A stretch of DNA of 58,079 nucleotides. Source: Macrostomum lignano. Lineage: Eukaryota. Position numbers and translations under genes: made by a program. The stretch lies in NCBI GenBank assembly GCA_002269645.1, contig NIVC01001895.1:1-58079 (forward strand). The letters run 5' to 3'. Below are positions 13,446 through 39,677 of this stretch, piece after piece. The notes under the pieces were generated by a model that saw only the letters and a program-made list of their open reading frames with translations, did not search any database and had not been told where the DNA came from. Numbering within the stretch: position 1 is the stretch's first letter; every line of letters starts with the position of its first letter.

Positions 13446-14943
13446 CGCGCCAGCACCTAATGAAAAAACAAATCGTGACAGATCTTAGCCTGTAGAAGCT
13501 TAAGGTTGCTATTTAGCAATTAAAAAAGTGCACTGCATCAAACTCGAATCCTGTGTGCTCTCGTACCTACTAGCTCTTCCCATTAAATTTGATTTATTCT
13601 CAGAGTTTCTACCGACAAAAGGCTCTCCAAGCGCACTCATTTCTTATTTTCATTATTTTCATTTAAGCAATACATTCGTAGCCAAAAGGCTAAGAGCTAT
13701 AGCCAGCTAAAAAGCTAAGAGAATGGCGAGTGTGCACAGACCCCAGGCCAAAATGTGCTTACAGGGCAGACCTGTTGCTGTGTATTGTGACTAATACATA
13801 TTTCTCCACAAGTGGGTAGCCCTGAGCTCGGGAGTAGACTCATGCAGTATGCGGAAAGGTTTTGCAACTTGAGGCAAATGCCCGAAAGTCTGCCCACTCT
13901 TCTAGAACGAGCCAACTGGATTGTTCGTAAAACCGCTGCTAGTTTAGCAATGCGACCCTCGGACACAACTCTGTGTACCGCGCCACCCAGCCATTGCTAG
14001 AGCACTCTCATCGACCCACTACGCCCGCGACTTAACAAAAATGTCATGCAAGACGCAAAGTATGCAGCAACCCCGAGTAGAAATGTACGCGAAATTCCTT
14101 ATGTATGATTGTACATTATTTGACGTTATTTGGGTTATAGTCGCATTTGACTTCCTATATTAATCAATTCCGTTTAAGCAGGTACGTTTGCATTTATTGT
14201 AGGAGCGGTAATTGTCGAGATTTACCTGGTCAATCTATTGAACAATGGCTAAGCATGCGATTCGTCTTCACGAGGTTGAAATGAAAGGCTTCAGAAGCAA
14301 AATTCAATAAAACGATGAAGCTAATCTTTACATACATTATACACTTCACAAGCGAATGTAGCGAACATATCGCTAGTGATCAGTAAATAGAAGAACAATG
14401 CATAACATGATAAAAGAGGATATAAACTAATGAAATGCATCGCAACCTCCTCAGAAGTTTCCAGTAGCTACAAAGTCAATTATACGTACCACTGCATAAA
14501 ATTAAAGCAAAGCCGAAGATGCGTAAACCCATTGCTACAAGTCAAAATGCCGATAAAGTATTGAGTTGAAGCGCAGGCTTATAATACTCGGTAAATATTT
14601 TATTTTTGCCGCTTCACAAAAGATTTCAGGCAAATAAAATGATATTCTTAGCACACAGCTAGCCAAGCGTGTTACAGCATTCAATTACGAAAGGCGTTGG
14701 TAAAGACCTACATTTACTACAGGCTGCAAATGCAAAACGCTCATTCGGCAGAAGTAGAGGGCGTGAAGCAAAGCATGCTTCTAGCATGAGCGAATTGGCT
14801 GCCAGGGAATGGGGGAGGGCTTCGTGACTTGCTTTGTTGCACTCAATGGTATACAAATGTTGGGCAGAAACGAACTGAGTCAGCTCACTGAACACTTGAG
14901 CAAAGAAAGTCCAACAGAAAATTGGAAAACTGACCGAACAGAG

Positions 14944-16566
14944 ATGGACAATCGCGGCTACTACACGATGCAGCCCCAGGCTCAGCAGTCCAACCAGTCC
15001 CAAAGTTACCAGTCCCAGACGCAGCAGAGAGTCGCCACAACCACATCGTCCGGCCAGCGGCAGCTCCAGTATGGCTACTCTGTCCCGGAAGTTCGGGTGG
15101 AGCTGGACACCCGCCAGCAGTATCCTGCCTCTACCGGACGATACGAATACTCGCAAAGTATCGGCGGCGGGACCGCAGCCAACGGAAACGGAACAAGCCA
15201 CTCGCTCAAGGCCCAGTTCGCGAACCAGCAGTTCGAGATGCAGCATCCGACTGTCACTGCGTCGAACACAAACAGAAACTTCCTCAGCGTCTCCGGACAC
15301 GACAAGCCTGACGGAGGTCACGGAGGCGGAAGTGCCGCAATCAGTGTGTGCGCTTCATCGAACTGCGACAACTCTGAGCACATGAACGAAGACCAGTACA
15401 GAGAGTGGCTCACCAAGAACTTTAAGTACCGCTTCGATCCGTACGTGACTGCTGGAGGCATGCCGCTCAAGGAGTTCATGGAGATGGCAGAGTCTGTCAA
15501 CTTTAACCGGTCTCGAAACCTTCAGGGACTGTTTAAGAGGCTGGACAAGGACGGAAACCAACGAGTGTCTTGGGACGAGTTCTTTAACGGAATGAAGTAC
15601 ACGAAAAAGTCGGAGGTGTCTCGATCGAAGAGAGTCATCAACTCGTTCATCGAGAGCATGACGCCTGCAGCGCAGAAGAAGCTTCGCAAAGAGAAGATCG
15701 AGGCAGCTCAAGCCGGAGAGCCGATCCCGGAAGAGAGCTACCTTGAGGCGTACAACTGCAGGCCGCCGCCGCTCTTCATTCCGCTGTTCTATGTAGCCGT
15801 TTGGATCTTCTTCATCATCTACACGGTTGAGCTGTCCAAGGGACCCGAGTGGAACAAGGTGGGATGGGAAAAAGGATTCCCGTACTACAGCCCGCTGGTC
15901 TTCTGTCCGAGTCTCCGACAAGAAGCTTGGCGCTTCGTGTCCTACATGTTCCTGCACAATGGCTACCACCACGTCTTCTTCAACACGATCCTGTCGTTCC
16001 TTCTAGGTGTGCCTCTTGAGACTGTTCACAAGGCTTGGCGTGTTGCACCAGTCTTCTTCATCGGCGTCATTATTGGTGCCATGGCCAGCAGCATCGCAGA
16101 CCATAACACAATGCTGATCGGAGCCTCCGGTGGGGTGTACGCTTTGTTCGGAGCCCACTATGCCACAGTGCTCATGAACTGGGAGGAGCTGCAGGATGAC
16201 TGGCTGGATATCAGAGCAAATCCGCTGAAATTCCTTCTGAGTGGGATCATGCGCCTTGTCTATCTGACCCTCTTGCTCATCCTGGACTTTGGCATCAGTT
16301 TCTATGGACGCTACTCCGGAACTCAAACCCTCCCTGTGAGCGTTGCTGCTCACGTCGGAGGCCTGCTGGCTGGGTTCTTTGCTGGAGTTCCCATTCTACG
16401 AAACATCGACAAGAAACCGTGGGAGAGCAAGGTATCGATCGTGTGCTGGGTTGTGCTGGCTTGCATGTTTCTTTTCGGTGTGTTCTGGAACATTTTCTAC
16501 AAGAACTACCCAGCAGCTGACAGCATCGTCTGCTCCAACACAGCGCTGGCCGACTCGATAGGATAA
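14944..16566 (+). CDS. Intronless EF-hand rhomboid protease, copy 2, 540 aa
   Basis: Colinear with copy 1 (offset 5558) with the same catalytic motifs. The ATG at 14944 is chosen by homology instead of 14809. Confidence 0.95.
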   Translation: MDNRGYYTMQPQAQQSNQSQSYQSQTQQRVATTTSSGQRQLQYGYSVPEVRVELDTRQQYPASTGRYEYSQSIGGGTAANGNGTSHSLKAQFANQQFEMQHPTVTASNTNRNFLSVSGHDKPDGGHGGGSAAISVCASSNCDNSEHMNEDQYREWLTKNFKYRFDPYVTAGGMPLKEFMEMAESVNFNRSRNLQGLFKRLDKDGNQRVSWDEFFNGMKYTKKSEVSRSKRVINSFIESMTPAAQKKLRKEKIEAAQAGEPIPEESYLEAYNCRPPPLFIPLFYVAVWIFFIIYTVELSKGPEWNKVGWEKGFPYYSPLVFCPSLRQEAWRFVSYMFLHNGYHHVFFNTILSFLLGVPLETVHKAWRVAPVFFIGVIIGAMASSIADHNTMLIGASGGVYALFGAHYATVLMNWEELQDDWLDIRANPLKFLLSGIMRLVYLTLLLILDFGISFYGRYSGTQTLPVSVAAHVGGLLAGFFAGVPILRNIDKKPWESKVSIVCWVVLACMFLFGVFWNIFYKNYPAADSIVCSNTALADSIG

Positions 16567-16906: not shown

Positions 16907-17814
16907 TGGTGCTTGACTGGGTGCTGCGGACTGCTCTTCCTACCGACGACGACGGTTTTCTGCTGCAGCGACGCGTGGGTCGACGTCAACCGGAGAAGCG
17001 GCTCAGCGTGCTTGGCTACGCCGACGACCTCGCCCTGCTGTCCTCGACCGTCGAGGGCGCCCAACGGCAGCTGGACAGGCTGGTTGCCGTTGCGGCGAGT
17101 GTCGGCCTGGTGGTCAACACGCAGAAGACCGTTGTGCTCTGCGTGCCGGACGACATCGAGGCTGCAATATTTTGCCGAGGCGCTGACGGGCAGGCGACCG
17201 AACTCCCGCGATGTCAGCAGTTCGTCTACCTCGGCGGTCTGGTTCCAGACGCTCGCGAGGACCTGCGACGCCGCCGCGGGCTTGCCTGGGCTGCCTTTCG
17301 TTCTGTGAGGGCAGTCCTGCAGTCCGAGGCCCTACCGGACCGCCAGAGGGCGGCGCTGTTCCAGGCGGTAATCGAGACCGTCCTGCTGTACAACGCCGAG
17401 ACCTGGACGCTGACGGACTCACTCGAACAGCAAGTCGATGCGGCGCACGCTGGTCTGCTGCGCGCCGCCTTCAACATCGGCGTCGAGCGAGTCACCAACG
17501 CGGCACTCTATCGCCGCGCTGGCCTGCCACGTCCAAGTGATCTACTGCGCCGTCGGCGACTCCAGCTCGCAGGCCATCTCATCCGCGCCGAGTCGTACTG
17601 CCCACAGCCGGTGCAGGAGGTGCTGCTGCTCACGCTGCAGGCACCCTACCGGCGAGGTCAAGCGCGAACTCGGCGTTATGTCGACTGTCTGCTGGCTGAC
17701 GCCGGCGCCCCGGACACTGCCGGTGGCGCGGCCTTTGTTCGCGCCCAAGCCATGAAGCGCGCCCTGTGACGCTGACTTTTACCATCATGACAGCGTATTT
17801 TGTTGTTGTTGTTG
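16907..17814 (+). mobile_element. 5'-truncated RTE-like LINE, RT C-terminal part still in frame
   Basis: LGYADDLALLS (YADD), GLVVNTQKTVV, FVYLGG, DLRRRRGLAWAAF. Short 3' UTR with (TTG)n tail. Candidate 7-bp TSD CCAGTTC (16900-16906 and 17815-17821). Confidence 0.9.
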
Positions 17815-20699: not shown

Positions 20700-21669
20700 A
20701 AATGAATGAAATTGAGTTTCTGCAGCAACTTGGTCATCGCAATCCTGGCATAAGAAGTTAATTCGATCGAAAAACAAAAAAAAATTTGTCATCTTGTTTT
20801 ACGAAAAAAGGACAATATTAATTAAGTCTCTTTTGTCAAAATTTTGAAAACAAACTGCTCTTGTCCGTTAGAACCCTTACTTTCCGTCTATATTTTAGTT
20901 AGAAGCTTCTTACTTTCTCAGTTACTTCTATATAGAAAAAAACTGAATAGACGGACAGCAAACGAAGCGATAGAGCGCCCCCAGCTCTCTCTATCTCACA
21001 TTCTATCTTCATGCTCATGATGTTGGGCTTTCGCAGCCTGAAAATGTCTCACAATAATAAACAACTTGGACAGACGGTGCAGTGGTTAAGCTAGTTGCAT
21101 ATCCAACTTTAAAGGCTACGCCTGGATAAATAGTGTATGGACTAGCGATCTGCGCCCCCCTCTGGGGAGGCAAAAAAAGAAAGGAATAAAGATTTTTGAA
21201 TCGACTACATGTAGGTTTTGACTTTGTGGAGTCACACTATTGTGAAGTAAATTTACTAAGGAAGATGGTGTTTAAAGCAAAACAGCATTAGACCGAAAGC
21301 CAGCTATCGAATCTTAGATATCAGATCCTCCTCTCAGAGCTTTGTCTCCAAGGATCTGAGCAACCCCAGAAGCCCTCTAGCATTTAAAAACTTCAGGCAA
21401 AATATGGAGATCAAGGCAGTTAAGTGTCGGCCAAATGGACGAAGATGGCGGCTGACTCTTTCGAAGATTTCTCGCCCATAAAGAAATATAGATATTTTGA
21501 TCTCCAAGCCTACTTGGAGATTGAGTATAATATTAATTGAGTATGTCAGCTCCTGATAAACGCATACAGCGATGGACAACTGTGCATGGATACTATACAC
21601 GGTGCAGTCTAAGGGTTGTTCTGATATTGTGAAGCTTTGAATTTCTATTGACAATAATAGCGGAAAAAT

Positions 21670-22105
21670 CCATGGCTAGCAGCATCGCAGACCACAACAC
21701 CATGCTGATCGGAGCCTCCGGTGGGGTGTACGCTTTGTTCGGAGCCCACTATGCCACAGTGCTCATGAACTGGGAGGAGCTGCAGGATGACTGGCTGGAT
21801 ATCAGAGCAAATCCGTTGAAATTCCTTCTGAGTGGGATCATGCGCCTTGTCTATCTGACCCTCTTGCTCATCCTGGACTTTGGCATCAGTTTCTATGGAC
21901 GCTACTCCGGAACTCAAACCCTCCCTGTGAGCGTTGCTGCTCACGTCGGAGGCCTGCTGGCTGGGTTCTTTGCTGGAGTTCCCATTCTACGAAACATCGA
22001 CAAGAAACCGTGGGAGAGCAAGGTATCGATCGTGTGCTGGGTTGTGCTGGCTTGCATGTTTCTTTTCGGCGTGTTCTGGAACATTTTCTACAAGAACTAC
22101 CCAGC
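21670..22105 (+). pseudogene. Rhomboid 3' fragment (MASSIADH...YKNYPA), closest to copy 2
   Basis: Near-identical to 16079-16514. Shares copy-2 variants GCCACAGTG, AAGGTATCGATC and CTGGCTTGC. Lacks the N-terminal half, the L1 loop and the native C-terminus. Confidence 0.9.
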
Positions 22106-22569
22106 TAACGCAATGGGCAAACCGTTAAAAAGTTTTTCATGCTTATTTATTAGCCTTGTACTTCGTTTCATGGTCTTGATTTTTAAACATTTTTCAACTT
22201 TGAACTTCCTGCGCATTACTAGAATTCTACTTTGTCGGCCAACCTAGTGCTAGAGCTAATTTAATTAAATTCCTGGTGTGATGAAATTTTCAACTGAAGA
22301 AAGACGCCCCAAGAATCCGCCTGGATGCTGCGACCAAATTTACTAGTCGGAAATGGCATGCGGCTGTGTACTTTTCGGCCTCTATTGCCATATCCCTTTT
22401 TTAGCAATAACCATAGCCACTTCCTGACAGCTGGGACACCGGCGTAGTTGGTCGGCTAGTCAGGCTCAAGGACTCCAGTATTCAGAACTTGGACGGTTAA
22501 TTCTACTTCCTTGAAGTCCTAGATTTCTGAGTTATATTTCACTGAAATATATTCAAATTCTATGCAAGA

Positions 22570-23324: not shown

Positions 23325-23431
23325 ATGGAGTTGGATGCAGATGATCGACTGCAGAACTCCGGCGATGTCGGTGAGAGGCTGGAGCAACAGCAACAACAGC
23401 AGCAGGCTCGGATTTCGGTTGTTCCAGCGAA
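23325..23431 (+). CDS. PACC1: PAC/TMEM206 homologue, probable exon 1 (MELDADDRLQNSGDVGERLEQQQQQQQARISVVPA)
   Basis: AAGATGG start context. Phase-2 donor GTATGC at 23432 is compatible with the TTGCAG acceptor before 24318. No homology evidence for this exon itself. Confidence 0.55.
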
Positions 23432-23519
23432 GTATGCAAAATCTATCGAGATACATTGTGAATGCAGAAACTTGGGAGGAAATTTATTATGAAAAACTAG
23501 TGTGAAAAAGACGGATATT

Positions 23520-24288
23520 AGATTAGATAAAACTAGACTAGATTATATTAAACTAGATTAGATCAGACTAGATTAGACTGGATTAAATTAGATTAGACTG
23601 GATTATATTGTACTAGACTAGGCTAGACTAGATTAGATTAGATTAGATTAGATTTAACTAGATTAGACTAGACTATATTAGATTAGATTAGACTAGATTA
23701 GACTAGACTAGACTAGACTAGACTAGACTAGACTAGACTAGATTAGATTAGACTAGACTAGACTAGACTAGACTAGACTAGACTAGACTAGACTAGACTA
23801 GACTAGACTAGACTAGACTAGACTATATTAGATTATATTAGACTAGATTAGATTAGACTAGACTAGACTAGACTAGACTAGATTATATTAGACTAGGCTA
23901 GACTAGACTAGACTAGACTAGATTATATTGGACTAGATTAGATTAGAGTAGAGTAGATTAGATTAGACTAGACTAGACTAGATTATATTAGACTAGATTA
24001 GATTAGAGTAGATTAGATTAGACTAGACTAGACTAGACTAGACTAGACTAGATTATATTGGACTAGGCTAGACTAGACTAGACTAGACTAGACTAGACTA
24101 GATTATATTGGACTAGATTAGATTAGAGTAGAGTAGATTAGATTAGACTAGACTAGACTAGATTATATTAGACTAGATTAGATTAGATTAGACTAGACTA
24201 GACTAGACTAGACTAGACTAGATTAGATTAGACTAGACTAGACTAGAATAGATTAGATTAGACTAGATTAGATTAGATTAGATTAGAT
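23520..24288. repeat. (TAGAC/TAGAT)n pentanucleotide microsatellite, PAC intron 1
   Basis: Directly visible. Confidence 0.97.
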
Positions 24289-24317
24289 ATCTACGCTCCC
24301 ACGCCATCGCATTGCAG

Positions 24318-24649
24318 CCCAGCCGCCCAGCCGTCACTCCGCCAGCGAACTTGGCTACAGAAGCGTCGCGCACTGATCCAATTCGCGCCGATAAACGGCC
24401 GGACAAGACAAAGAAAAAAGCGTCGATCAACGTCGTCGGATGCGGCTTCGGTGACAGCAGCGCCGACTGCGCAGCGGCACATGACCCGCAGCGAGTACGT
24501 GTGCAGACTGGTCTGCACCGCAGTGCTCACCGCCTTCGGCTTGGCTGCCTGCCTGTTCGCCGTGCAGCTGCTCGAGGAACTGCTGCTGGCGCTGCGGTTC
24601 CCGGTTCGGTCGCTCAAGCACCGACCGGTGGAAGAATTTGAGGCCCCTG
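24318..24649 (+). CDS. PACC1: PAC/TMEM206 homologue exon 2 (cytosolic N-terminus, TM1, start of ectodomain)
   Basis: Hydrophobic TM1 (LVCTAVLTAFGLAACLFAVQLL), then ALRFPVRSLKHRPVEEFEAP aligns without gaps to human KLKHPVMSVSYKEVDRYDAP (recalled). Phase-1 donor GTGCGT. Confidence 0.88.
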
Positions 24650-24655
24650 GTGCGT

Positions 24656-25233
24656 ATGAGCAGCTTCTGACCGATGCTTTATGAGCAGCTTCTGACTGAT
24701 GCTTTATGAGCAGCTTCTGACCGATGCTTTATGAGCAGCTTCTGACCGATGCTTTATGAGCAGCTTCTGACCGATGCTTTATAAGCAGCTTCTGACCGAT
24801 GCTTTATGAGCAGCTTCTGACCGATGCTTTATGAGCAGCTTCTGACCGATGCTTTATGAGCAGCTTCTGACCGATGCTTTATGAGCAGCTTCTGACCGAT
24901 GCTTTATGAGCAGCTTCTGACCGATGCTTTATGAGCAGCTTCTGACCGATGCTTTATGAGCAGCTTCTGACCGATGCTGTATGAGCAGCTTCTGACTGAT
25001 GCTTTATGAGCAGCTTCTGACCGATGCTTTATGAGCAGCTTCTGACCGATGCTGTATGAGCAGCTTCTGACTGATGCTTTATGAGCAGCTTCTGACCGAT
25101 GCTTTATGAGCAGCTTCTGACCGATGCTTTATGAGCAGCTTCTGACCGATGCTTTATGAGCAGCTTCTGACCGATGCTTTATGAGCAGCTTCTGACCGAT
25201 GCTGTATGAGCAGCTTCTGACCGATGCTTTATG
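24656..25233. repeat. 25-bp minisatellite (ATGAGCAGCTTCTGACCGATGCTTT), about 23 copies
   Basis: Starts 6 nt after the exon-2 donor. Confidence 0.97.
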
Positions 25234-25244
25234 CTTTATATTCA

Positions 25245-25350
25245 TCCCATCCCTATCTATCCATCCAATCATCCCATCCCAATCTATCCCATCCCAATCC
25301 ATCCCATTCAAGCTATCCCATCCCAATCGATCCCATCCCCACCTATCCCT
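25245..25350. repeat. (ATCCC)n-like microsatellite
   Basis: Degenerate pentamer run. Confidence 0.8.
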
Positions 25351-25734
25351 TCTCAATGAGCATGACAACAATATCTTCCCTAGAAGCTGAGATCTCACAG
25401 ACAGCCTTTATTGCTGATGTGCCCTCGTCATAAATGAATTCTATATAAATATTGATACACAGGGAGTCTGTCTGAGCCCTCCCGTCCCATCAGGGCCTCC
25501 GTGGCTACTGCAGTTTATAATTAATAACAGGCAGCGCGGCGCACTGACTGCGCTTCCGGGATTTCAGGCTTAGGGATGCACTGGTGCACTCTAGTGGGTT
25601 GGATAAAAAGCAGGCTTTGAAAAAGATTGCTTCGAAGCCTATCTAACAGCGCCTGTCAGTCATGTTGTCAACTTTTTCTGCCTCAAAAACTGTCCACCAG
25701 ATGCTTACTCAGATGATTGTCACTTCAGGTGTCA

Positions 25735-27620
25735 GTAGTGGCGCCACTATCTCCCTCAGATCCTTCAGTAGTGGCGTCACTATCGCCATCAGATCCTTCA
25801 GTAGTGGCGCCACTATCTCCCTCAGATCCTTCAGTAGTGGCGCCATTATCTCCCTCAGATCCTTCAGTTGTGGCGTCACTATCGCCATCAGATCCTTCAG
25901 TAGTGGCGCCACTATCTCCCTCAGATCCTTCAGTAGTGGCGCCACTTTCTCCCTCAGATCCTTCAGTAGTGGCGCCACTATCTCCCTCAGATCCTTTAGT
26001 AGTGGCGCCATTATCTCCCTCAGATCCTTCAGTAGTGGCGCCACTATCTCTCTCAGATCCTTCAGTAGTGGCGCCACTATCTCCATCAGATCCTTCAGTA
26101 GTGGCGCCATTATCTCCCTCAGATCCTTCAGTAGTGGCGCCACTATCTCTCTCAGATCCTTCAGTAGTGGCGCCACTATCTCCCTCAGATCCTTCAGTAG
26201 TGGCGCCACTATCTCCCTCAGATCCTTCAGTAGTGGCGCCACTATCTCCCTCAGATCCTTCAGTAGTGGCGCCATTATCTCCCTCAGATCCTTCAGTAGT
26301 GGCGCCACTATCTCCATCAGATCCTTCAGTAGTGGCGCCACTATCTCCCTCAGATCCTTCAGTAGTGGCGCCACTATCTCTCTAAGATTCTTCAGTAGTG
26401 GCGCTACTGTCTCTCTCAGATCCTTCAGTAGTGGCGCCGCTGTCTCTCTCAGATCCTTCAGTAGTGGCGCCGCTGTCTCTCTCAGATCCTTTAGTAGTGG
26501 CGCCATTATCTCCCTCGGATCCTTTAGTAGTGGCGCCACTATCTCTCTAAGATCCTTCAGTAGTGGCGCCGCTGTCTCCCTCAGATCCTTCAGTAGTGGC
26601 GCCACTATCTCTCTCAGATCCTTCAGTAGTGGCGCCACTATCTCCATCAGATCCTTCAGTAGTGGCGCCACTATCTCCATCAGATCCTTCAGTAGTGGCG
26701 CCATTATCTCCCTCAGATCCTTCAGTAGTGGCGCCACTATCTCTCTCAGATCCTTCAGTAGTGGCGCCACTATCTCCCTCAGATCCTTCAGTAGTGGCGC
26801 CACTATCTCCCTCAGATCCTTCAGTAGTGGCGCCACTATCTCCCTCAGATCCTTCAGTAGTGGCGCCACTATCTCCATCAGATCCTTCAGTAGTGGCGTC
26901 ACTATCGCCATCAGATCCTTCAGTAGTGGCGCCACTATCTCCCTCAGATCCTTCAGTAGTGGCGCCATTATCTCCCTCAGATCCTTCAGTTGTGGCGTCA
27001 CTATCGCCATCAGATCCTTCAGTAGTGGCGCCACTATCTCCCTCAGATCCTTCAGTAGTGGCGCCACTTTCTCCCTCAGATCCTTCAGTAGTGGCGCCAC
27101 TATCTCCCTCAGATCCTTTAGTAGTGGCGCCATTATCTCCCTCAGATCCTTCAGTAGTGGCGCCACTATCTCTCTCAGATCCTTCAGTAGTGGCGCCACT
27201 ATCTCCATCAGATCCTTCAGTAGTGGCGCCATTATCTCCCTCAGATCCTTCAGTAGTGGCGCCACTATCTCTCTCAGATCCTTCAGTAGTGGCGCCACTA
27301 TCTCCCTCAGATCCTTCAGTAGTGGCGCCACTATCTCCCTCAGATCCTTCAGTAGTGGCGCCACTATCTCCCTCAGATCCTTCAGTAGTGGCGCCATTAT
27401 CTCCCTCAGATCCTTCAGTAGTGGCGCCACTATCTCCATCAGATCCTTCAGTAGTGGCGCCACTATCTCCCTCAGATCCTTCAGTAGTGGCGCCACTATC
27501 TCCCTCATATCCTTCAGTAGTGGCGCCACTATCTCTCTCAGATCCTTCAGTAGTGGCGCCACTATCTCTCTCAGATCCTTCAGTAGTGGCGCCACTATCT
27601 CCCTCAGATCCTTCAGTAGT
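25735..27620. repeat. 33-bp minisatellite, about 57 copies, with internal block duplication
   Basis: Unit AGATCCTTCAGTAGTGGCGCCACTATCTCCCTC. The variant pattern recurs at an offset of 1122 bp (34 units). Confidence 0.97.
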
Positions 27621-28032
27621 TAGCGGCGCCCTTGATTGTCAACTGTGTTGTCAGCCTGTCAAAAATAAGCAAAATATCAGAGGCACACACCAATCAAACC
27701 AAACATCTGATACAAAATATTCCGTGTCATGATGTAAGCAGAAAAAATCTCTGATCGCCCAGGCACCCATTTTTATCATACAGAGAAACACTGGGAGAAT
27801 GGAGTAGATCTATGGGAAACAATTGCCTGGAACTGATATCCCGTGCGATCTAAGCTCCATTGTTTGACAACCCCAGACAATGGCTCGTATATTGTTGTTG
27901 GTTGACTCGAAAAGACTGATTTCTGTTCAATTAATCAACTGACAGCTTAATCTAATTACCCGATAGGCTAAGGTTTATGAAGCAAGAAAAATCAATCAAT
28001 ATTTTTTCGCACTTGAATATGTTTCCAATCAG

Positions 28033-28107
28033 CCATCGTGATTTTCCCGGAGAAGGCGCACCTCGAGTCCTGCAATCATTTCAATGAGCTGCAGATGGAA
28101 TTTTGGA
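28033..28107 (+). CDS. PACC1: PAC/TMEM206 homologue exon 3
   Basis: (A)IVIFPEKAHLESCNHFNELQMEFW versus human GIALYPGQAQLLSCKHH (recalled). Acceptor TTTCCAATCAG, donor GTGAGT, phase 1/1, 75 nt. Absent from the ORF track. Confidence 0.88.
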
Positions 28108-28299
28108 GTGAGTTGTACTTTTATCATTTCTTCATGATCTCAAGTTGTATTTATTACTGTACAGTGGGTTCTAACCGATGTAGCTACTGATTCAAGGATG
28201 CTGATTTAGAGTTGTACATGTTTGCTAGTGAAATCCATGTTTGTGATTTGTTTATTTGATCTTGCTGTTCGGTTGTGGTTGATATTATTTTTATTGTTG

Positions 28300-28661
28300 C
28301 TGTTATTGTTGATGCTGTTGTTGTTGTTGTTGTTGATATATTTTTATTGTTGCTGTTATTTTTATTGTTGTTGTTATTGTTGATCTTGTTGTTGTTGTTA
28401 TTGTTGTTGTTGCTGCTGTTGCTACTGTTATTGTTTTGTTTTTGTTGTTTTTGTTGTTTTTATTGATATTGTTGTTGTTTTTGTTGTTTTTTGTTGTTGT
28501 TATTGTTTTTGTTGTTGTTGTTGCTATTGTTGTTGTTGTTAATGCTATCTATTGTTATTGTTAATTTTGTTGTTGTTGCTATTGTTATAGTTGTTGTTGT
28601 TGTTGTTGCTATTGTTGTTATTGTTAATGTTTTTGTTATTGTTAATGTTGTTGTTGTTGCT

Positions 28662-28703
<42 letters not shown>

Positions 28704-28815
28704 GCTATTGTTATTTTTGTTAATGTTGTTGTTATTGTTAATTTTGTTGTTGTTGCTATTGTTGTTGTTGCTAATGTTTTTTTTATTGTTTATGTTGTTG
28801 TTGTTGCTATTGTTA
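28300..28815. repeat. (TTG/TTA)n trinucleotide microsatellite, PAC intron 3
   Basis: Directly visible; yields the spurious poly-L/V ORFs. Confidence 0.95.
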
Positions 28816-28903
28816 TTTACCTTTGATACTTCTGTCTTGTGTGCTGGGATTAAATAGATATTTACCTATTAAAGTAATTCATGATTGACCGTCTTCATTG
28901 CAG

Positions 28904-29138
28904 ACAATGCCTCGGACTGGAATCTGCAAACAATAAACTGCACCTTCATCTCAGTGGAGTACAATGACCCTTACTCACTCCGGTTAAACGACTCCCATCC
29001 CGTAATAGTTTTTCGGGGACCGAGAAGGGTCAAGGAGAAGGAGACCGTGTTTCTGCACTTTGTCACCCACAGTCAAAGTCAGGACTTTTACACCATGTCG
29101 TTTCTGCTGATGCACAACTTCTCCGAGTTCAGTGCGCT
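28904..29138 (+). CDS. PACC1: PAC/TMEM206 homologue exon 4 (ectodomain)
   Basis: INCTFISVEYNDPYS..VIVFRGPRRVKEKETVFLHF..SQDFYTMSFLLMHNFSEF versus human MNCTTQRINYTDPFS..LIVQGPREVKKRELVFLQF..SEDFSAIDYLLFSSFQEF (recalled). Acceptor TTCATTGCAG, donor GTGAGT, phase 1/2. Confidence 0.92.
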
Positions 29139-29159
29139 GTGAGTTTGGAATTCGATGCT

Positions 29160-32100
29160 GATTTGTCACCTGAGTGAGCTATTGATGTGCTCATTTCTGT
29201 AATATGATTGTCACCTGAGTGAGCTATTGATGTGCTCATTTCTGTAATATGATTGTCACCTGAATGAGCTATTGATGTGCTCATTCATTTCTGTAATATG
29301 ATTGTCACCTGAGTGAGCTATTGATGTGCTCATTTCTGTAATATGATTGTCACCTGAGTGAGCTATCGATGTGCTCATTTCTGTAATATGATTGTCACCT
29401 GAGTGAGCTATTGATGTGCTCATTCATTTCTGTAATATGATTGTCACCTGAGTGAGCTATTGATGTGCTCATTTCTGTAATATGATTGTCACCTGAATGA
29501 GCTATTGATGTGCTCATTTCTGTAATATGATTGTCACCTGACTGAGCTATTGATGTGCTCATTTCTGTAATATGATTGTCACCTGAGTGAGCTATTGATG
29601 TGCTCATTTCTGTAATATGATTGTCACCTGACTGAGCTATTGATGTGCTCATTTCTGTAATATGATTGTCACCTGAGTGAGCTATTGATGTGCTCATTTC
29701 TGTAATATGATTGTCACCTGAGTGAGCTATTGATGTGCTCATTTCTGTAATATGATTGTCACCTGAGTGAGCTATTGATGTGCTGATATCTGTAATATGA
29801 TTGTCACCTGAGTGAGCTATTGATGTGCTCATTTCTGTAATATGATTGTCACCTGAGTGAGCTATTGATGTGCTGATATCTGTAATATGATTGTCACCTG
29901 AGTGAGCTATTGATGTGCCCATTTCTGTAATATGATTGTCACCTGAGTGAGCTATTGATGTGCTCATTTCTGTAATATGATTGTCACCTGAGTGAGCTAT
30001 TGATGTGCTCATTCATTTCTGTAATATGATTGTCACCTGAGTGAGCTATTGATGTGCTCATTTCTGTAATATGATTGTCACCTGAGTGAGCTATTGATGT
30101 GCTCATTTCTGTAATATGATTGTCACCTGAGTGAGCTATTGATGTGCTCATTCATTTCTGTAATATGATTGTCACCTGAGTGAGCTATTGATGTGCTCAT
30201 TTCTGTAATATGATTGTCACCTGACTGAGCTATTGATGTGCTGATATCTGTAATATGATTGTCACCTGAGTGAGCTATTGATGTGCTCATTTCTGTAATA
30301 TGATTGTCACCTGAGTGAGCTATTGATGTGCTCATTTCTGTAATATGATTGTCACCTGAGTGAGCTATTGATGTGCTCATTCATTTCTGTAATATGATTG
30401 TCACCTGAGTGAGCTATTGATGTGCTCATTTCTGTAATATGATTGTCACCTGACTGAGCTATTGATGTGCTGATATCTGTAATATGATTGTCACCTGAGT
30501 GAGCTATTGATGTGCTCATTTCTGTAATATGATTGTCACCTGAGTGAGCTATTGATGTGCTCATTTCTGTAATATGATTGTCACCTGAATGAGCTATTGA
30601 TGTGCTCATTTCTGTAATATGATTGTCACCTGAATGAGCTATTGATGTGCTCATTTCTGTAATATGATTGTCACCTGAGTGAGCTATTGATGTGCTCATT
30701 TCTGTAATATGATTGTCACCTGAGTGAGCTATTGATGTGCTCATTTCTGTAATATGATTCTCACCTGACTGAGCTATTGATGTGCTCATTTCTGTAATAT
30801 GATTGTCACCTGAGTGAGCTATTGATGTGCTCATTTCTGTAATATGATTGTCACCTGAGTGAGCTATTGATGTGCTCATTTCTGTAATATGATTGTCACC
30901 TGAGTGAGCTATTGATGTGCTCATTCATTTCTGTAATATGATTGTCACCTGAGTGAGCTATTGATGTGCTCATTTCTGTAATATGATTGTCACCTGACTG
31001 AGCTATTGATGTGCTGATATCTGTAATATGATTGTCACCTGAGTGAGCTTTTGATGTGCTCATTTCTGTAATATGATTGTCACCTGAGTGAGCTATTGAT
31101 GTGCTCATTTCTGTAATATGATTGTCACCTGAATGAGCTATTGATGTGCTCATTTCTGTAATATGATTGTCACCTGAATGAGCTATTGATGTGCTCATTT
31201 CTGTAATATGATTGTCACCTGAGTGAGCTATTGATGTGCTCATTTCTGTAATATGATTGTCACCTGAGTGAGCTATTGATGTGCTCATTTCTGTAATATG
31301 ATTCTCACCTGACTGAGCTATTGATGTGCTCATTTCTGTAATATGATTGTCACCTGAGTGAGCTATTGATGTGCTCATTTCTGTAATATGATTGTCACCT
31401 GAGTGAGCTATTGATGTGCTCATTTCTGTAATATGATTGTCACCTGAGTGAGCTATTGATGTGCTCATTCATTTCTGTAATATGATTGTCACCTGAGTGA
31501 GCTATTGATGTGCTCATTTCTGTAATATGATTGTCACCTGACTGAGCTATTGATGTGCTGATATCTGTAATATGATTGTCACCTGAGTGAGCTTTTGATG
31601 TGCTCATTTCTGTAATATGATTGTCACCTGAGTGAGCTATTGATGTGCTCATTTCTGTAATATGATTGTCACCTGAATGAGCTATTGATGTGCTCATTTC
31701 TGTAATATGATTGTCACCTGAATGAGCTATTGATGTGCTCATTTCTGTAATATGATTGTCACCTGAGTGAGCTATTGATGTGCTCATTTCTGTAATATGA
31801 TTGTCACCTGAGTGAGCTATTGATGTGCTCATTTCTGTAATATGATTCTCACCTGACTGAGCTATTGATGTGCTCATTTCTGTAATATGATTGTCACCTG
31901 AGTGAGCTATTGATGTGCTCATTTCTGTAATATGATTGTCACCTGAGTGAGCTATTGATGTGCTCATTCATTTCTGTAATATGATTGTCACCCGAGTGAG
32001 CTATTGATGTGCTCATTTCTGTAATATGATTGTCACCTGACTGAGCTATTGATGTGCTGATATCTGTAATATGATTGTCACCTGAGTGAGCTATTGATGT

Positions 32101-35100
32101 GCTCATTTCTGTAATATGATTGTCACCTGAGTGAGCTATTGATGTGCTCATTTCTGTAATATGATTGTCACCTGAGTGAGCTATTGATGTGCTCATTTCT
32201 GTAATATGATTGTCACCTGAGTGAGCTATCGATGTGCTCATTTCTGTAATATGATTGTCACCTGAGTGAGCTATTGATGTGCTCATTTCTGTAATATGAT
32301 TGTCACCTGAGTGAGCTATTGATGTGCTCATTTCTGTAATATGATTGTCACCTGAGTGAGCTATTGATGTGCTCATTTCTGTAATATGATTGTCACCTGA
32401 GTGAGCTATTGATGTGCTGATATCTGTAATATGATTGTCACCTGAGTGAGCTATTGATGTGCTCATTTCTGTAATATGATTGTCACCTGAGTGAGCTATT
32501 GATGTGCTCATTTCTGTAATATGATTGTCACCTGAGTGAGCTATTGATGTGCTCATTTCTGTAATATGATTGTCACCTGAGTGAGCTATTGATGTGCTCA
32601 TTTCTGTAATATGATTGTCACCTGAGTGAGTTATTGATGTGCTGATATCTGTAATATGATTGTCACCTGAGTGAGCTATCGATGTGCTGATATCTGTAAT
32701 ATGATTGTCACCTGAGTGAGCTATTGATGTGCTCATTTCTGTAATATGATTGTCACCTGAGTGAGCTATTGATGTGCTCATTTCTGTAATATGATTGTCA
32801 CCTGAGTGAGCTATTGATGTGCTCATTTCTGTAATATGATTGTCACCTGAGTGAGCTATTGATGTGCTCATTTCTGTAATATGATTGTCACCTGAGTGAG
32901 CTATTGATGTGCTCATTTCTGTAATATGATTGTCACCTGAGTGAGCTATTGATGTGCTCATTTCTGTAATATGATTGTCACCTGAGTGAGCTATTGATGT
33001 GCTCATTTCTGTAATATGATTGTCACCTGAGTGAGCTATTGATGTGCTCATTTCTGTAATATGATTGTCACCTGACTGAGCTATTGATGTGCTCATTTCT
33101 GTAATATGATTGTCACCTGAGTGAGCTATTGATGTGCTCATTTCTGTAATATGATTGTCACCTGAATGAGCTATTGATGTGCTCATTTCTGTAATATGAT
33201 TGTCACCTGAATGAGCTATTGATGTGCTCATTTCTGTAATATGATTGTCACCTGAGTGAGCTATTGATGTGCTCATTTCTGTAATATGATTGTCACCTGA
33301 GTGAGCTATTGATGTGCTCATTTCTGTAATATGATTCTCACCTGACTGAGCTATTGATGTGCTCATTTCTGTAATATGATTGTCACCTGAGTGAGCTATT
33401 GATGTGCTCATTTCTGTAATATGATTGTCACCTGAATGAGCTATTGATGTGCTCATTTCTGTAATATGATTGTCACCTGAGTGAGCTATTGATGTGCTCA
33501 TTTCTGTAATATGATTGTCACCTGAGTGAGCTATTGATGTGCTCATTTCTGTAATATGATTGTCACCTGAGTGAGCTATTGATGTGCTCATTTCTGTAAT
33601 ATGATTGTCACCTGAGTGAGCTATTGATGTGCTCATTCATTTCTGTAATATGATTGTCACCTGAGTGAGCTATTGATGTGCTCATTTCTGTAATATGATT
33701 GTCACCTGACTGAGCTATTGATGTGCTGATATCTGTAATATGATTGTCACCTGAGTGAGCTATTGATGTGCTCATTTCTGTAATATGATTGTCACCTGAG
33801 TGAGCTATTGATGTGCTCATTTCTGTAATATGATTGTCACCTGAGTGAGCTATTGATGTGCTCATTCATTTCTGTAATATGATTGTCACCTGAGTGAGCT
33901 ATTGATGTGCTCATTTCTGTAATATGATTGTCACCTGACTGAGCTATTGATGTGCTGATATCTGTAATATGATTGTCACCTGAGTGAGCTATTGATGTGC
34001 TCATTTCTGTAATATGATTGTCACCTGAGTGAGCTATTGATGTGCTCATTTCTGTAATATGATTGTCACCTGAATGAGCTATTGATGTGCTCATTTCTGT
34101 AATATGATTGTCACCTGAATGAGCTATTGATGTGCTCATTTCTGTAATATGATTGTCACCTGAGTGAGCTATTGATGTGCTCATTTCTGTAATATGATTG
34201 TCACCTGAGTGAGCTATTGATGTGCTCATTTCTGTAATATGATTGTCACCTGACTGAGCTATTGATGTGCTCATTTCTGTAATATGATTGTCACCTGAGT
34301 GAGCTATTGATGTGCTCATTTCTGTAATATGATTGTCACCTGAATGAGCTATTGATGTGCTCATTTCTGTAATATGATTGTCACCTGAGTGAGCTATTGA
34401 TGTGCTCATTTCTGTAATATGATTGTCACCTGAGTGAGCTATTGATGTGCTCATTTCTGTAATATGATTGTCACCTGAGTGAGCTATTGATGTGCTCATT
34501 TCTGTAATATGATTGTCACCTGAGTGAGCTATTGATGTGCTCATTCATTTCTGTAATATGATTGTCACCTGAGTGAGCTATTGATGTGCTCATTTCTGTA
34601 ATATGATTGTCACCTGAGTGAGCTATTGATGTGCTCATTTCTGTAATATGATTGTCACCTGAGTGAGCTATTGATGTGCTCATTTCTGTAATATGATTGT
34701 CACCTGAGTGAGCTATTGATGTGCTCATTTCTGTAATATGATTGTCACCTGACTGAGCTATTGATGTGCTCATTTCTGTAATATGATTGTCACCTGAGTG
34801 AGCTATTGATGTGCTGATATCTGTAATATGATTGTCACCTGAGTGAGCTATTGATGTGCTCATTTCTGTAATATGATTGTCACCTGAGTGAGCTATTGAT
34901 GTGCTCATTTCTGTAATATGATTGTCACCTGAGTGAGCTATTGATGTGCTCATTTCTGTAATATGATTGTCACCTGAGTGAGCTATTGATGTGCTCATTT
35001 CTGTAATATGATTGTCACCTGAGTGAGCTATTGATGTGCTGATATCTGTAATATGATTGTCACCTGAGTGAGCTATTGATGTGCTCATATCTGTAATATG

Positions 35101-35945
35101 ATTGTCACCTGAGTGAGCTATTGATGTGCTCATTTCTGTAATATGATTGTCACCTGAGTGAGCTATTGATGTGCTCATTTCTGTAATATGATTGTCACCT
35201 GAGTGAGCTATTGATGTGCTCATTTCTGTAATATGATTGTCACCTGAGTGAGCTATTGATGTGCTCATTTCTGTAATATGATTGTCACCTGAGTGAGCTA
35301 TTGATGTGCTCATTTCTGTAATATGATTGTCACCTGAGTGAGCTATTGATGTGCTCATTTCTGTAATATGATTGTCACCTGAGTGAGCTATTGATGTGCT
35401 CATTTCTGTAATATGATTGTCACCTGAGTGAGCTATTGATGTGCTCATTTCTGTAATATGATTGTCACCTGAGTGAGCTATTGATGTGCTCATTTCTGTA
35501 ATATGATTGTCACCTGAGTGAGCTATTGATGTGCTCATTTCTGTAATATGATTGTCACCTGAGTGAGCTATTGATGTGCTCATTTCTGTAATATGATTGT
35601 CACCTGAGTGAGCTATTGATGTGCTCATTTCTGTAATATGATTGTCACCTGAGTGAGCTATTGATGTGCTCATTTCTGTAATATGATTGTCACCTGAGTG
35701 AGCTATTGATGTGCTCATTTCTGTAATATGATTGTCACCTGAGTGAGCTATCGATGTGCTGATATCTGTAATATGATTGTCACCTGACTGAGCTATCGAT
35801 GTGCTGATATCTGTAACATGATTGCACCTGAGCTGATGTGCTGATATGTATGATTGTCACCTGAGTGAGCTATTGATGTGCTGATTTCTGTAATATGATT
35901 GTCACCTGAGTGAGCTATTGATGTGTTGACTTCCGTAATATGATC
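29160..35945. repeat. 45-bp satellite, about 150 copies (6.8 kb), PAC intron 4, with higher-order structure
   Basis: Unit GATTGTCACCTGAGTGAGCTATTGATGTGCTCATTTCTGTAATAT. A 544-bp period (12 units + 4 nt) is visible at 30352/30896/31440. Confidence 0.98.
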
Positions 35946-36009
35946 ATTATGTTTCAATTAATAATTCAATCAAAAAGCACTCCAAAAACCGTACTGATCA
36001 TGTTTTCAG

Positions 36010-36166
36010 ACCGGACCAACTCAGATTAGACCGCATAGCCCGAGCTCACGCCCAGGAGTCCTTGCACGCTGCGTCGGCAGGCCTGCGCCTGTGGGGCAAG
36101 ATCAGCATGACCCAGCTGCACCTGGAAGATGGAGAAGGACCAGCTAGGACCATTCTAGATATGGAG
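36010..36166 (+). CDS. PACC1: PAC/TMEM206 homologue exon 5
   Basis: SAGLRLWGKISMTQLHLEDGEGPARTILDME versus human SGGFRTWVKMSLVKTKEEDGREAVEFRQE (recalled). Acceptor TGTTTTCAG in phase 2 completes the CT|A Leu codon. Phase-0 donor GTCAGC. Confidence 0.87.
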
Positions 36167-36296
36167 GTCAGCGGGGCTTTCTCGGATCCAAATATTGGTT
36201 GCCTAATATATTTTCAGAGTGTCAGGGGGCAGAGCTTTCCCAAACCCTAAATTTCACAACGTCGGAAACAAAACTTGCATCAGACTGCATAAACTA

Positions 36297-37040
36297 TAAA
36301 TTTCACAAGCCCTAAATTTCACAAGCCCTAAATTTCACAAGCCCTAAATTTCACAAGACCTAAATTTCACGAGACCTAAATTTCACAAGACCTAAATTTC
36401 ACAAGACCTAAATTTCACAAGCCCTAAATTTCACAAGCCCTTAATTTCACAAGCCCTAAATTTCACAAGCCCTAAATTTCACAAGACCTAAATTTCAAAA
36501 GCCCTAAATTTCACAAGACCTAAATTTCAAAAGCCCTAAATTTTACAAGACCTAAATTTCAAAAGCCCTAAATTTCACAAGACCTAAATTTCACAAGACC
36601 TAAATTTCACAAGACCTAAATTTCACAAGACCTAAATTTCAAAAGCCCTAAATTTCACAAGACCTAAATTTCACAAGCCCTTAATTTCACAAGCCCTAAA
36701 TTTCACAAGACCTAAATTTCAAAAGCCCTAAATTTCACAAGACCTAAATTTCAAAAGCCCTAAATTTCACAAGACCTAAATTTCAAAAGCCCTAAATTTC
36801 ACAAGACCTAAATTTCACAAGCCCTAAATTTCACAAGCCCTAAATTTCACAAGACCTAAATTTCACAAGACCTAAATTTCACAAGCCCTAAATTTCACAA
36901 GACCTAAATTTCACAAGCCCTAAATTTTACAAGCCCTAAATTTCACAAGACCTAAATTTCACAAGACCTAAATTTCACAAGCCCTAAATTTCACAAGACC
37001 TAAATTTCACAAGCCCTAAATTTTACAAGACCTAAATTTC
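36297..37040. repeat. 16-bp minisatellite (TAAATTTCACAAGMCC), about 46 copies, inside a dispersed element (about 36240-37105)
   Basis: Directly visible. The flanks are homologous to the inverted copy at about 44436-44720. Confidence 0.95.
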
Positions 37041-37176
37041 ACGAGACCTTAATTTCACAACGCTTAAAGACACTATATGGAGATACAATATTTCTTCTAC
37101 AATTTCTTCTTCTTCAGCATATTGCTTGAATTTTTATAATAAAAGTTTGTTCAAATCATTCTTCAACAACGCGCAG

Positions 37177-37674
37177 AGCAGCTTGGCGGCTTCGTATTTC
37201 ATAGAAAACACGCCAGAAGCGCCGAGCAAGTCGGACAACGCAACAGACGGGCGGAGGCGGCGGAGACGGCGGCGCATGAAGCGAACTCAGGCAGGGCCGA
37301 TGCGACCAACTGCGGACACGAGACTGAAGAAGCAGTTCTTTCTCTTCTTCGAATGGAAGAGCGGCATTCTGGCTGAGTCGCATGTCGTTCGAACTCAATC
37401 CGTTTGGAGCGTCGGCGCCTCTCTGTGCGGCGTGCTGCTCACCCTGCACAAGGGCTACAGCCTGGCGGCTGGCAACGTGCGCAGACTCAAGCGAACTCGA
37501 GACCGGCGTCAGAGAAGCCAGCAGCACCGTCAGCGGTCAATGCAAGCCATGATAAAGGAGATTGCTGAGCAGTCTGGCAATGACTGCGGGCAGAATCCGC
37601 AGGTCGATCTGGACGAGATTAACGCGGTTGATGAGCATCTGAATGAGTCTACTCATGCTCGTGTGGCTGTCTAA
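37177..37674 (+). CDS. PACC1: PAC/TMEM206 homologue exon 6 (end of ectodomain, TM2, basic C-tail, stop)
   Basis: QFFLFFEWKSGILAESHVVRTQSVWSVGASLCGVLLTLHKG aligns without gaps to human QLFFVVFEWKDPFIQKVQDIVTANPWNTIALLCGAFLALFKA (recalled). The phase-0 acceptor GCGCAG at 37176 is inferred. Confidence 0.9.
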   Translation, partial: SSLAASYFIENTPEAPSKSDNATDGRRRRRRRRMKRTQAGPMRPTADTRLKKQFFLFFEWKSGILAESHVVRTQSVWSVGASLCGVLLTLHKGYSLAAGNVRRLKRTRDRRQRSQQHRQRSMQAMIKEIAEQSGNDCGQNPQVDLDEINAVDEHLNESTHARVAV

Positions 37675-38702
37675 GCATTAATTTAATTAATTTAATTACT
37701 ACAGAAATTCGTATAGGACTCTTTTACGGCTATTTACGCACTGTTTTGCAATCTATCTAATTACACGTACGGCTGATTCAGAAGTAAATAAGTATTTTTG
37801 TGATGGCTACTTTACTGACGCGATCTGGTTTGGACTGGCCCGCCATACGCTGAAATAAAGCTGTAGCCATGTACTTTTAACTGCATCCAGAGCTTTAAAC
37901 CTCCGCTAGAAGACCATGCACACAAAAAGCTTTTCATCCTATTAGCAAATCAACAAATGCAGAGACAAAAACTGTTTCAATTGTTGCAATTTCTAAACGT
38001 GTGGTTTTTTCAAAGCATTCGCATGCAATCGGCAGCTGAAAAAAGGAGGACAAAAAGAGGAATAGAGGCTTTAAAAAGCGATCGGTGCAGATACAAATTC
38101 TCAATGCAAACCCAGACTCGCTTGCTAACTGGTTGTCTCTCTATAGAAGCGATGCTCATGGTAAAGTTAATGATTTGCAAGATGAATAAATACTTTGCGG
38201 ATGTCAGTATTCAGTATTCGGAATAGGAATTTAATGGCCTGAATCGGACCACGTGGAATAAAGTGCAATTATACTCTAGCAGTGTAGAATTAGTGAATTA
38301 GACAAGAATCTATTAGAATCTATAATGAGGACAACTGTACATAATATATATTACATTACACGTCGACGCATTTATATTTGCACATGTACATAGTGTACAT
38401 ATTATATTATGACGTATGTATGAATTACAATTTTACATTACACATTACAACAGAGGAACGGTTTAAGCTGCATACATAAACCCAAGGACTACCCAAGTAG
38501 TTGTCAAGTAGTCTACTTTAAGTAGTCCTTGCATAACCTTGATTGACTAAATTCATTCAACCGTCAATTGCATTTTATTGCAGATTTCGTGTGGCAGTCA
38601 TCAAAATACTAAATCTGACGTTTTGTTTGAGTGTAAGCGTGTGTGTGTGTGTCTGTATTGTAACGTTCTACGCGCTTTCTCTGGGGGTTTTATGGCTAAA
38701 TA

Positions 38703-39677
38703 CTTCGGGTGTGTCATAAGTAATGTCACTGCAGGCCTCTGTCTAAAATATGTAGGCACATGGACTTGTGGGTAGTGTAGCTGCAAAGTATACTTGGTGA
38801 AGCAATAGCAGTGCATTTGAGACGTGCAAAGGTTGTTTATGGCCCAAGCTATCGCAAGAATACATGTACGCCAAGCAGATTTAGAAAGTGCAACGCGATG
38901 AAAAACCGTCTATGCAGCGAACAAAAATCACCATGAATCTCGACATGACGCCTGCACCAAGCAGATCCGCAAGGTGTTTAGCAGCCGGGGCTTGAATGAC
39001 ATCCTAAACTGCCTGGTTGCTGAGGATGAAAGCTGGCTCCACCTGGATGGCAAGGGCAGCAAAGCAGACAATCGCTGCTGGCTGGGAGCTGGGGACTCCA
39101 GGCCGATGGTGACTAGGAAGTCCATCTTGGACAAGAAGACCATGCTGCTGGTAGCCTTCACGCCAAACAAACGAGTCTCCATCTGCACAACTCCACCGAA
39201 CACCAAGGTCGATGGCCAGTATTTTATCGACTTTGTCCGGCACACTGGAGACCTCTGGCGCACTCTCCGGTCAAATCCATGTCACCGGGACGAAGTTCTG
39301 TGGCAGATGGACACCGCACGGCTGCACATCTGAAGGCTGTTTCGAATTTTCTGCCTGTACGGCGAGTGAATATGCTCTGACAGAGTCCCTACAGCCCGGA
39401 CTTCAACTTTTGCAAGAGATTCCTATTCAAATGGCTGAAGGCTGACTTTTCCAAGAAGAGTTGCAAACCGTGAAGAGGTCAAACAGGCCGCGTTGCACTG
39501 GTTATGGCAGTTGGAGGAAAAACACCTGCAGGCTGAGGTGGACAAGCTGTATGAGCATTGCCAGAGGGTGATTGATATTGGGGGACTCTATGCTGTTGAG
39601 TGCTACAGTTTTGTTAATCTGCGATTGCAAGTTCGTCTGTTTTCACATCAGTGACATTACTTATGACACACCCGAAG
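38703..39677 (+). mobile_element. Internally deleted mariner (Tc1/mariner) element, 975 bp
   Basis: Perfect 29-bp TIR CTTCGGGTGTGTCATAAGTAATGTCACTG with TA TSD (38701-02 and 39678-79). Transposase remnants VAEDESW, QMDTARLH and SPYSPDFN, with frameshifts. Confidence 0.93.

Follow-up and report, generated by a model that had tools for sequence, protein, structure and literature searches.

A probable six-exon gene for a PAC (TMEM206)-family protein in the flatworm Macrostomum lignano

The window analyzed here is the whole of contig NIVC01001895.1 (58,079 nucleotides) from Macrostomum lignano, assembly GCA_002269645.1. Between positions 23,325 and 37,674 of its forward strand lies a gene that we propose encodes a member of the proton-activated chloride channel family (PAC, also known as PACC1 or TMEM206). 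An initial annotation, made from the DNA letters, had read six exons here, and when these intervals are joined exactly as given they yield a 1404-nt open reading frame (ORF) of 467 amino acids (aa) ending in TAA, with no internal stops. Coordinates, GT-AG sites, exon end phases (2,1,1,2,0) and lengths all proved exact, and the annotation's guess at a probable flatworm source was borne out by the M. lignano UniProt entries A0A1I8GKN4 and A0A1I8GFN0. It had also observed that the ORF track holds only fragments of the gene; in the mechanical ORF list for the window, exon 6 is indeed the sole exon to appear as a long ORF (37126-37674). The features of the gene are as follows.

23325-23431, forward strand: exon 1, start codon and aa 1-36; end phase 2
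24318-24649, forward strand: exon 2, basic cytoplasmic stretch, first transmembrane segment (TM1) and start of the ectodomain (RFPVRS...EEFEAP); end phase 1; tblastn E=3e-13
28033-28107, forward strand: exon 3, 75 nt, encoding AIVIFPEKAHLESCNHFNELQMEFW; tblastn E=4e-3 to the M. lignano paralogue, collinear
28904-29138, forward strand: exon 4, ectodomain with the NCT glycosylation motif, GPRRVKEKETVFL and E218 (human E181); end phase 2; tblastn E=1e-15
36010-36166, forward strand: exon 5, ectodomain with LRLWGKISM, EDG (E289, D290) and E302 (human E261); end phase 0; tblastn E=5e-10
37177-37674, forward strand: exon 6, 34-aa insert, FFLFFEWK, second transmembrane segment (TM2), basic C-terminal tail and TAA stop; tblastn E=1e-25
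37854-37859, forward strand: candidate polyadenylation signal AATAAA, the first after the stop codon and 180 nt downstream of it; pattern only

Exons 2 to 6 were recovered collinearly and at the same coordinates when five homologues were searched against the raw window by tblastn, and these searches returned no further exon and no second gene copy in the window. Exon 3 encodes C160 and H162, the equivalents of human C128 and H130, and exon 6 encodes K363 (human K288) and the pore lysine K394 (human K319). Exon 1 encodes a cytoplasmic N-terminal region of low complexity that includes a run of seven glutamines. No cross-species homology was found for it, and all of its support comes from A0A1I8GKN4 (P0004), which is identical to it and to its junction with exon 2, from the good context of the start codon (AACAAGATGG) and from an in-frame stop 12 codons upstream.

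The initial annotation had called the gene hidden. It is not, because UniProt already lists parts of it: the gene is catalogued there, split into two fragments of which one is misnamed. A0A1I8GKN4 matches the window translation at 169 of 169 residues, comprising 12 upstream codons, exons 1 and 2 and a read-through of intron 2 to the first stop, and bears the unrelated name 'TNFR-Cys domain-containing protein'. Its shape, running from stop to stop with intron 1 gone and intron 2 kept, suggests an origin in a partly spliced transcript. A0A1I8GFN0 (P0002), named 'Proton-activated chloride channel', corresponds to residues 173-421 of our model (exons 4 to 6) with one substitution (Q229H), and agrees with exon 4 from the second codon of that exon onward. 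Between them the two fragments reproduce junctions 1, 4 and 5; both are without exon 3, and neither connects TM1 with TM2. What is new is the merged full-length six-exon model, together with a previously unannotated 75-nt exon that carries the equivalent of human H130.

All five introns begin with GT and end with AG, and tandem arrays, different in every intron, fill 88% of their sequence (11,412 of 12,946 intron bases).

23432-24317, forward strand: intron 1, GT..AG, with (ACTAG)x151
24650-28032, forward strand: intron 2, GT..AG, with a 25-bp unit x23 and a 33-bp unit x57
28108-28903, forward strand: intron 3, GT..AG, with (GTT)x181
29139-36009, forward strand: intron 4, GT..AG, with a 45-bp unit x147 (6.7 kb)
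36167-37176, forward strand: intron 5, GT..AG, with a 16-bp unit x48
25662-27623, forward strand: repeat-derived ORF in intron 2
25709-27595, reverse strand: repeat-derived ORF in intron 2, which is thus open on both strands
29395-35718, reverse strand: repeat-derived ORF in intron 4

The 25-bp array begins 6 nt past the exon 2 donor. Nested genes in introns 2 and 4 were considered and rejected, the long stop-free ORFs being artifacts of repeat units of 33 bp (11 codons) and 45 bp (15 codons). A 327-bit match to the Pfam family 'Apolipoprotein' in these intronic ORFs was likewise set aside as an artifact of tandem repetition.

The positions of the introns link this gene to PAC genes in distant animals. 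Exon-intron structures were rebuilt from the genomic loci of the annelid Owenia fusiformis, the hemichordate Ptychodera flava and the fish Trematomus bernacchii, and compared on an alignment of all four proteins. Introns 2, 4 and 5 of the flatworm gene (alignment columns 221, 351 and 404; phases 1, 2 and 0) coincide with introns in all three species, so that the flatworm gene shares three introns in position and phase with vertebrate PAC, the fish orthologue standing for vertebrate gene structure. Intron 3 (column 248, phase 1) is held in common with Owenia, where an exon of 75 nt with matching phases occupies this place too. Of the four species compared, only the flatworm has intron 1, which interrupts the unconserved N-terminus. 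As the columns and phases are the same, junctions 2 to 5 are verified to the nucleotide without recourse to RNA data. Conserved intron positions also argue for PAC orthology inherited from the bilaterian ancestor.

A different origin for so repeat-laden a locus would be that it is a non-functional duplicate, decaying after a whole-genome duplication, with a frame that has stayed open by chance. M. lignano underwent such a duplication recently (PMC7053086), satellites have swollen the introns and a transposase remnant lies 1.3 kb downstream; the near-identical second sequence A0A1I8GFN0, which differs by Q229H, also fits a recent whole-genome duplication. Against decay, the frame stays open through all 467 codons of the six exons, 10 of 10 splice dinucleotides are canonical, the family-invariant residues are intact, and frame and intron phases have been kept since the bilaterian ancestor, while a single substitution separates the two copies over 249 aa. 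We therefore regard a decaying copy as very improbable and continue with an intact gene.

Assignment of the encoded protein to PAC draws on several comparisons. A profile search, which the initial annotation had suggested as a check, matched Pfam TMEM206 (PF15122) at 124.1 bits (E=8.2e-36) against a curated gathering cutoff of 27 bits, the match being split into two segments that span profile positions 26-200 and the C-terminal portion. Apart from TMEM206, no Pfam family was found at E<=1, neither ASC nor P2X_receptor among them. A sequence search of the PDB at E<=1 returned seven distinct chains, all of them proton-activated chloride channel (E 2e-31 to 6e-25). BLASTP against human PAC (7jna, with the sequence rebuilt from HMMER alignments) gave 27% identity over 288 aa, from TM1 through TM2 (E=7e-33), and in the reverse direction profiles of spiralian homologues retrieve vertebrate PACs. 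The motifs that the initial annotation had listed for human PAC are all present in the BLASTP alignment (flatworm/human PVRS/PVMS, SC, NCT, GPRRVKEKETVFL/GPREVKKRELVFL, WGKIS/WVKMS, EDG, FEWK and W..LCG..K), except that the flatworm protein reads APA where human PAC has APG. Its identification of a PAC/TMEM206 homologue is thus upheld by Pfam, PDB, BLASTP and intron positions alike.

The alternative at this level is that the protein belongs to another family of trimeric channels with two transmembrane segments, ENaC/DEG/ASIC or P2X, and only looks like PAC. Topology is what these families share with it: a trimeric architecture of two transmembrane segments and a large ectodomain, which in the case of ASIC and ENaC/DEG extends to some acid-sensing members, and the overall shape of PAC has itself been described as ASIC-like (PMC9351481). 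However, those are cation rather than anion channels, and their sequence relationship to the flatworm protein is undetectable. We rejected membership of ENaC/DEG/ASIC and P2X because neither gave a Pfam or PDB match at E<=1; TMEM206 is the lone Pfam family and PAC chains the only PDB hits at that threshold, and the introns are placed as in PAC genes. This leaves a merely superficial likeness to PAC vanishingly improbable.

Hydropathy supports the layout of TM1, large ectodomain and TM2 given by the initial annotation. There are only two peaks, at aa 100-118 (Kyte-Doolittle 2.4) and aa 372-390 (1.26), both aligned with the human transmembrane segments, and the ectodomain maximum is 0.63. Five N-x-S/T sequons, the conserved NCT among them, lie between the peaks. 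The protein would begin with a cytoplasmic N-terminus (aa 1-95) and TM1 (~96-126), continue with a glycosylated ectodomain rich in beta structure (~127-375) and TM2 (~376-400), and end in a cytoplasmic tail that is basic. Homology to the human and pufferfish channels of solved structure makes a homotrimer most likely.

Residues with known roles in human PAC (PDB 7jna, 7jnc) are retained across the ectodomain and pore. The intrasubunit pair H130-E181, needed for folding and assembly (PMC9351481), is kept as H162 and E218, the histidine lying in exon 3. In the joint region, E261, needed for activity (PMC9351481), is kept as E302, and K288 of the FEWK motif as K363. Also kept, in human numbering, are E250, D251, W287, W304, both ectodomain cysteines (C128 and C149), and C311 and G312 of the LCG motif. 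Two positions of the acidic pocket remain acidic, with D109 replaced by E141 and E250 present as E289. K394 aligns with human K319 in HMMER, BLASTP and MAFFT alignments, and all family members examined carry K or R at this position. A passage of PMC8733619, citing Ruan 2020, states that K319E turns human PAC cation-selective; from its sequence, flatworm TM2 would line an anion-selective pore governed by K394. We consider it probable that the protein is an anion channel.

Several observations weigh against the interpretation as a PAC gene with a sound model. Exon 1 and its putative start codon depend on a database protein. TM2 is only moderately hydrophobic (Kyte-Doolittle 1.26 versus 1.73 in human). 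A structure prediction for the fragment of exons 4 to 6, from an eight-sequence alignment, was uninformative (mean pLDDT 48, pTM 0.35). A 34-aa insert with eight arginines breaks into the ectodomain. Among residues of human PAC, H98 and H131 are both phenylalanine in the flatworm (F130 and F163), E107 of the acidic pocket is P139, D289 is serine and D297 is valine, while E257 is replaced by R, T or I, depending on the placement of an adjoining 2-aa insertion; in human PAC all tested substitutions of E257 other than E257Q abolished activity (PMC9351481). Further differences from human PAC are Q296, which is histidine in the flatworm protein, and the longer, low-complexity cytoplasmic N- and C-termini (467 versus 350 aa in total); the two N-termini do not align, and equivalents of the human trafficking signals are not identifiable. 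Despite these points, an intact six-exon M. lignano gene for a PAC-family protein is the best explanation of the locus as a whole, to which we give a probability of about 0.9 on sequence evidence. Family membership and gene model, taken together, we hold to be nearly certain.

Whether such a channel would respond to acid is a separate matter, on which the initial annotation, in inferring an acid-sensing or acid-related channel, went further than the evidence supports. In human PAC, H98, H130, H131 and D269 are proposed to act jointly as pH sensors (PMC9351481), and H130 alone among these four is clearly kept. The counterpart of D269 is E312 in the BLASTP alignment and M344 in that made with MAFFT, an ambiguity that arises because the 34-aa insert begins there. 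The vertebrate proton switch, in which H98 moves into the pocket formed by E107, D109 and E250, does not exist in the flatworm protein and is absent from most invertebrate members too; it defines the vertebrate gating mechanism, not membership of the family. Acid gating is nevertheless plausible, given that H130-E181, E261, K288 and E250/D251 are kept, and D269 as glutamate under the BLASTP alignment. Judged from these residues, the chance that the channel is opened by acid is in our view just short of even.

The main competing possibility is that the protein is a true PAC-family channel that extracellular or luminal acid does not open, being constitutive, responsive to another stimulus or strongly shifted in pH dependence. 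As a corollary, proton activation via H98 and the acidic pocket would have arisen in the vertebrate lineage. The replacement of H98, H131 and E107 and the loss of E257 point this way. So does the distribution of H98: most spiralian homologues lack it, with N at this position in Owenia, Lineus, Capitella and Lamellibrachia and Y in that of the M. lignano paralogue, and Ptychodera has R, histidine being found only in vertebrates, Tubulanus and a few metagenome members. Moreover, human PAC with the four changes H98R/H130R/H131R/D269A is no longer sensitive to pH for the most part and passes current even when the pH is neutral (PMC9351481). On the other hand, the human single mutants H98A/Q and H130Q/H131Q are still acid-activated (PMC9351481), and therefore no single sensor is essential; the flatworm protein keeps H130, E181, E261, K288, E250 and D251, with D269 perhaps as E312, and the vertebrate orthologues tested so far are all acid-activated (PMC6663466). 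We take gating by something other than acid seriously while holding it somewhat doubtful.

The 34-aa insert, ENTPEAPSKSDNATDGRRRRRRRRMKRTQAGPMRPT, is lineage specific and contains a run of eight arginines. Encoded in exon 6, it has its counterpart in human PAC in the loop near residue 277 (~270-279). A FLAG tag placed at residue 277 of human PAC was detected on live, non-permeabilized cells (PMC9351481), and therefore the loop is extracellular. We asked whether the insert might be an unrecognized intron and rejected this: none of the in-frame GT..AG candidates has a polypyrimidine tract, splicing at them would remove conserved residues, and A0A1I8GFN0 keeps the insert. Its arginine run is encoded by mixed arginine codons. 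The polybasic RRRRRRRRMKR resembles a proprotein-convertase site, and proteolytic processing in the manner of ENaC is conceivable for a sequence of this kind in an exposed ectodomain loop.

A second lineage-specific feature sits in the pore. All spiralian members have a histidine directly before the pore lysine or arginine (LTLHK/R), at the position of human F318, which is phenylalanine in vertebrates. This histidine could place a titratable group in the pore itself. It is possible, although we think it unlikely on the present alignments, that the spiralian PAC homologues, that of the flatworm included, form a set of anion channels with gating unlike that of vertebrate PAC.

TMEM206 is a small family. 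An exhaustive search with a profile built from homologues found 195 proteins at E<=1e-3 (31 at E<=1e-30) among 1.84 billion representative proteins; members were also sought with the flatworm protein itself, the low-complexity stretches (polyQ and polyR) being removed from the query. Named deuterostome members come from mammals, birds, fishes and the hemichordate Ptychodera, and named spiralian members from the annelids Owenia, Capitella, Lamellibrachia and Ridgeia and the nemerteans Tubulanus and Lineus, together with two Macrostomum paralogues. In NCBI, the homologues from annelids, nemerteans and the hemichordate bear the name 'proton-activated chloride channel-like'. A neighbor-joining tree (281 columns) follows the species tree, with a spiralian clade, a deuterostome clade and a divergent clade of environmental sequences. 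The annelid and nemertean proteins are 29-35% identical to the flatworm protein over the core and share with it two residues characteristic of spiralians, G and H at the positions of human I307 and F318 respectively, as well as, in Owenia, the exon plan including the 75-nt exon. Unlike the Macrostomum pair, they keep Glu or Asp at the position of E257.

The two Macrostomum genes are sisters inside the spiralian clade. The paralogue, A0A1I8HTS3 (P0001), is 53% identical over the conserved core and likewise has the spiralian LTLHK pore motif and a residue other than histidine at human position 98. In contrast to the gene described here, it is without the R8 insert, has a 21-aa insert of its own after the equivalent of exon 3, and carries tyrosine at the position of H162 (human H130). 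Its database model is chimeric, with a DDE_3 transposase fused at the N-terminus. Another chimeric model is that of the kangaroo rat Dipodomys ordii (P0027, XP_012870434), in which PAC matches are confined to residues 121-162 and from 165 on.

The founding eLife paper on the family (Ullrich et al., 2019) reported no homologues in animals simpler than hemichordates and described vertebrate PAC as a single gene without paralogues (PMC6663466). The spiralian homologues and the Macrostomum paralogue contradict both statements. In the literature collection searched, combining TMEM206 or PACC1 with flatworm, protostome or annelid led to no paper on protostome PACs, and the view of the initial annotation that PAC has been characterized almost only in vertebrates was sustained, functional study having been confined to them. 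Full-length intronless genes of the family were also observed on environmental contigs, at 1220-2347 of a TARA ocean metagenome scaffold (L004) and at 135-1535 of JGI 3300046521 (L005/L006). These, with P0031, P0032, P0035, P0036 (found on ENA contigs of up to 2.3 Mb) and P0041, make up the divergent clade, which is separate from both the spiralian and the deuterostome clade of named members and may widen the taxonomic range of the family.

The remainder of the window is rich in repeats, with at least 20 distinct tandem arrays in its 58 kb, and contains the following features.

2120-2587, reverse strand, and 16909-17769, forward strand: retroelement fragments, with integrase (Integrase_H2C2 and rve) and a weak reverse-transcriptase match
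9386-11008 and 14809-16566, forward strand: two intronless-looking tandem ORFs (540 and 585 aa), EF-hand and Rhomboid (99 bits each)
21648-22247, forward strand: third, partial Rhomboid ORF, just upstream of the PAC-like gene
38953-39538, forward strand: remnant, with a frameshift, of a transposase of the DDE_3 (Tc1/mariner-like) type, 1.3 kb beyond the stop codon of the PAC-like gene
49225-50039: 26/53-bp array related to the satellite at 52398-54851
50161-50691, forward strand: 176-aa ORF with a DTW domain (74 bits), satellites on both sides
52398-54851: 26-bp satellite, 95 copies, which causes a strong GC skew at 52-55 kb

The Rhomboid ORFs are a local duplication of a rhomboid protease, and the DTW ORF is probably an exon of a DTWD-type gene. 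The DDE_3 remnant shares 69% identity (94% in a second, short piece) with the transposase fused in A0A1I8HTS3; the presence of the same transposon family beside both PAC-like loci is probably a coincidence involving a high-copy element.

These results concern the annotation and comparative biology of a known family rather than a new kind of system. The merged six-exon model mends a gene that is split and half misnamed in UniProt. Introns shared from flatworm to fish, relatives in annelids and nemerteans and the second paralogue in Macrostomum date the PAC family at least to the bilaterian ancestor. If the spiralian homologues were indeed to form a set of anion channels gated differently from vertebrate PAC, then vertebrates would have added proton activation through H98 to an older anion channel of bilaterians. 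The flatworm protein is in effect a natural variant without H98, H131, E107 and E257, and as such could be informative on which of the proposed sensors matter. M. lignano is tractable to transgenesis (PMC7053086), and the physiological role of the channel could accordingly be tested in vivo in this animal.

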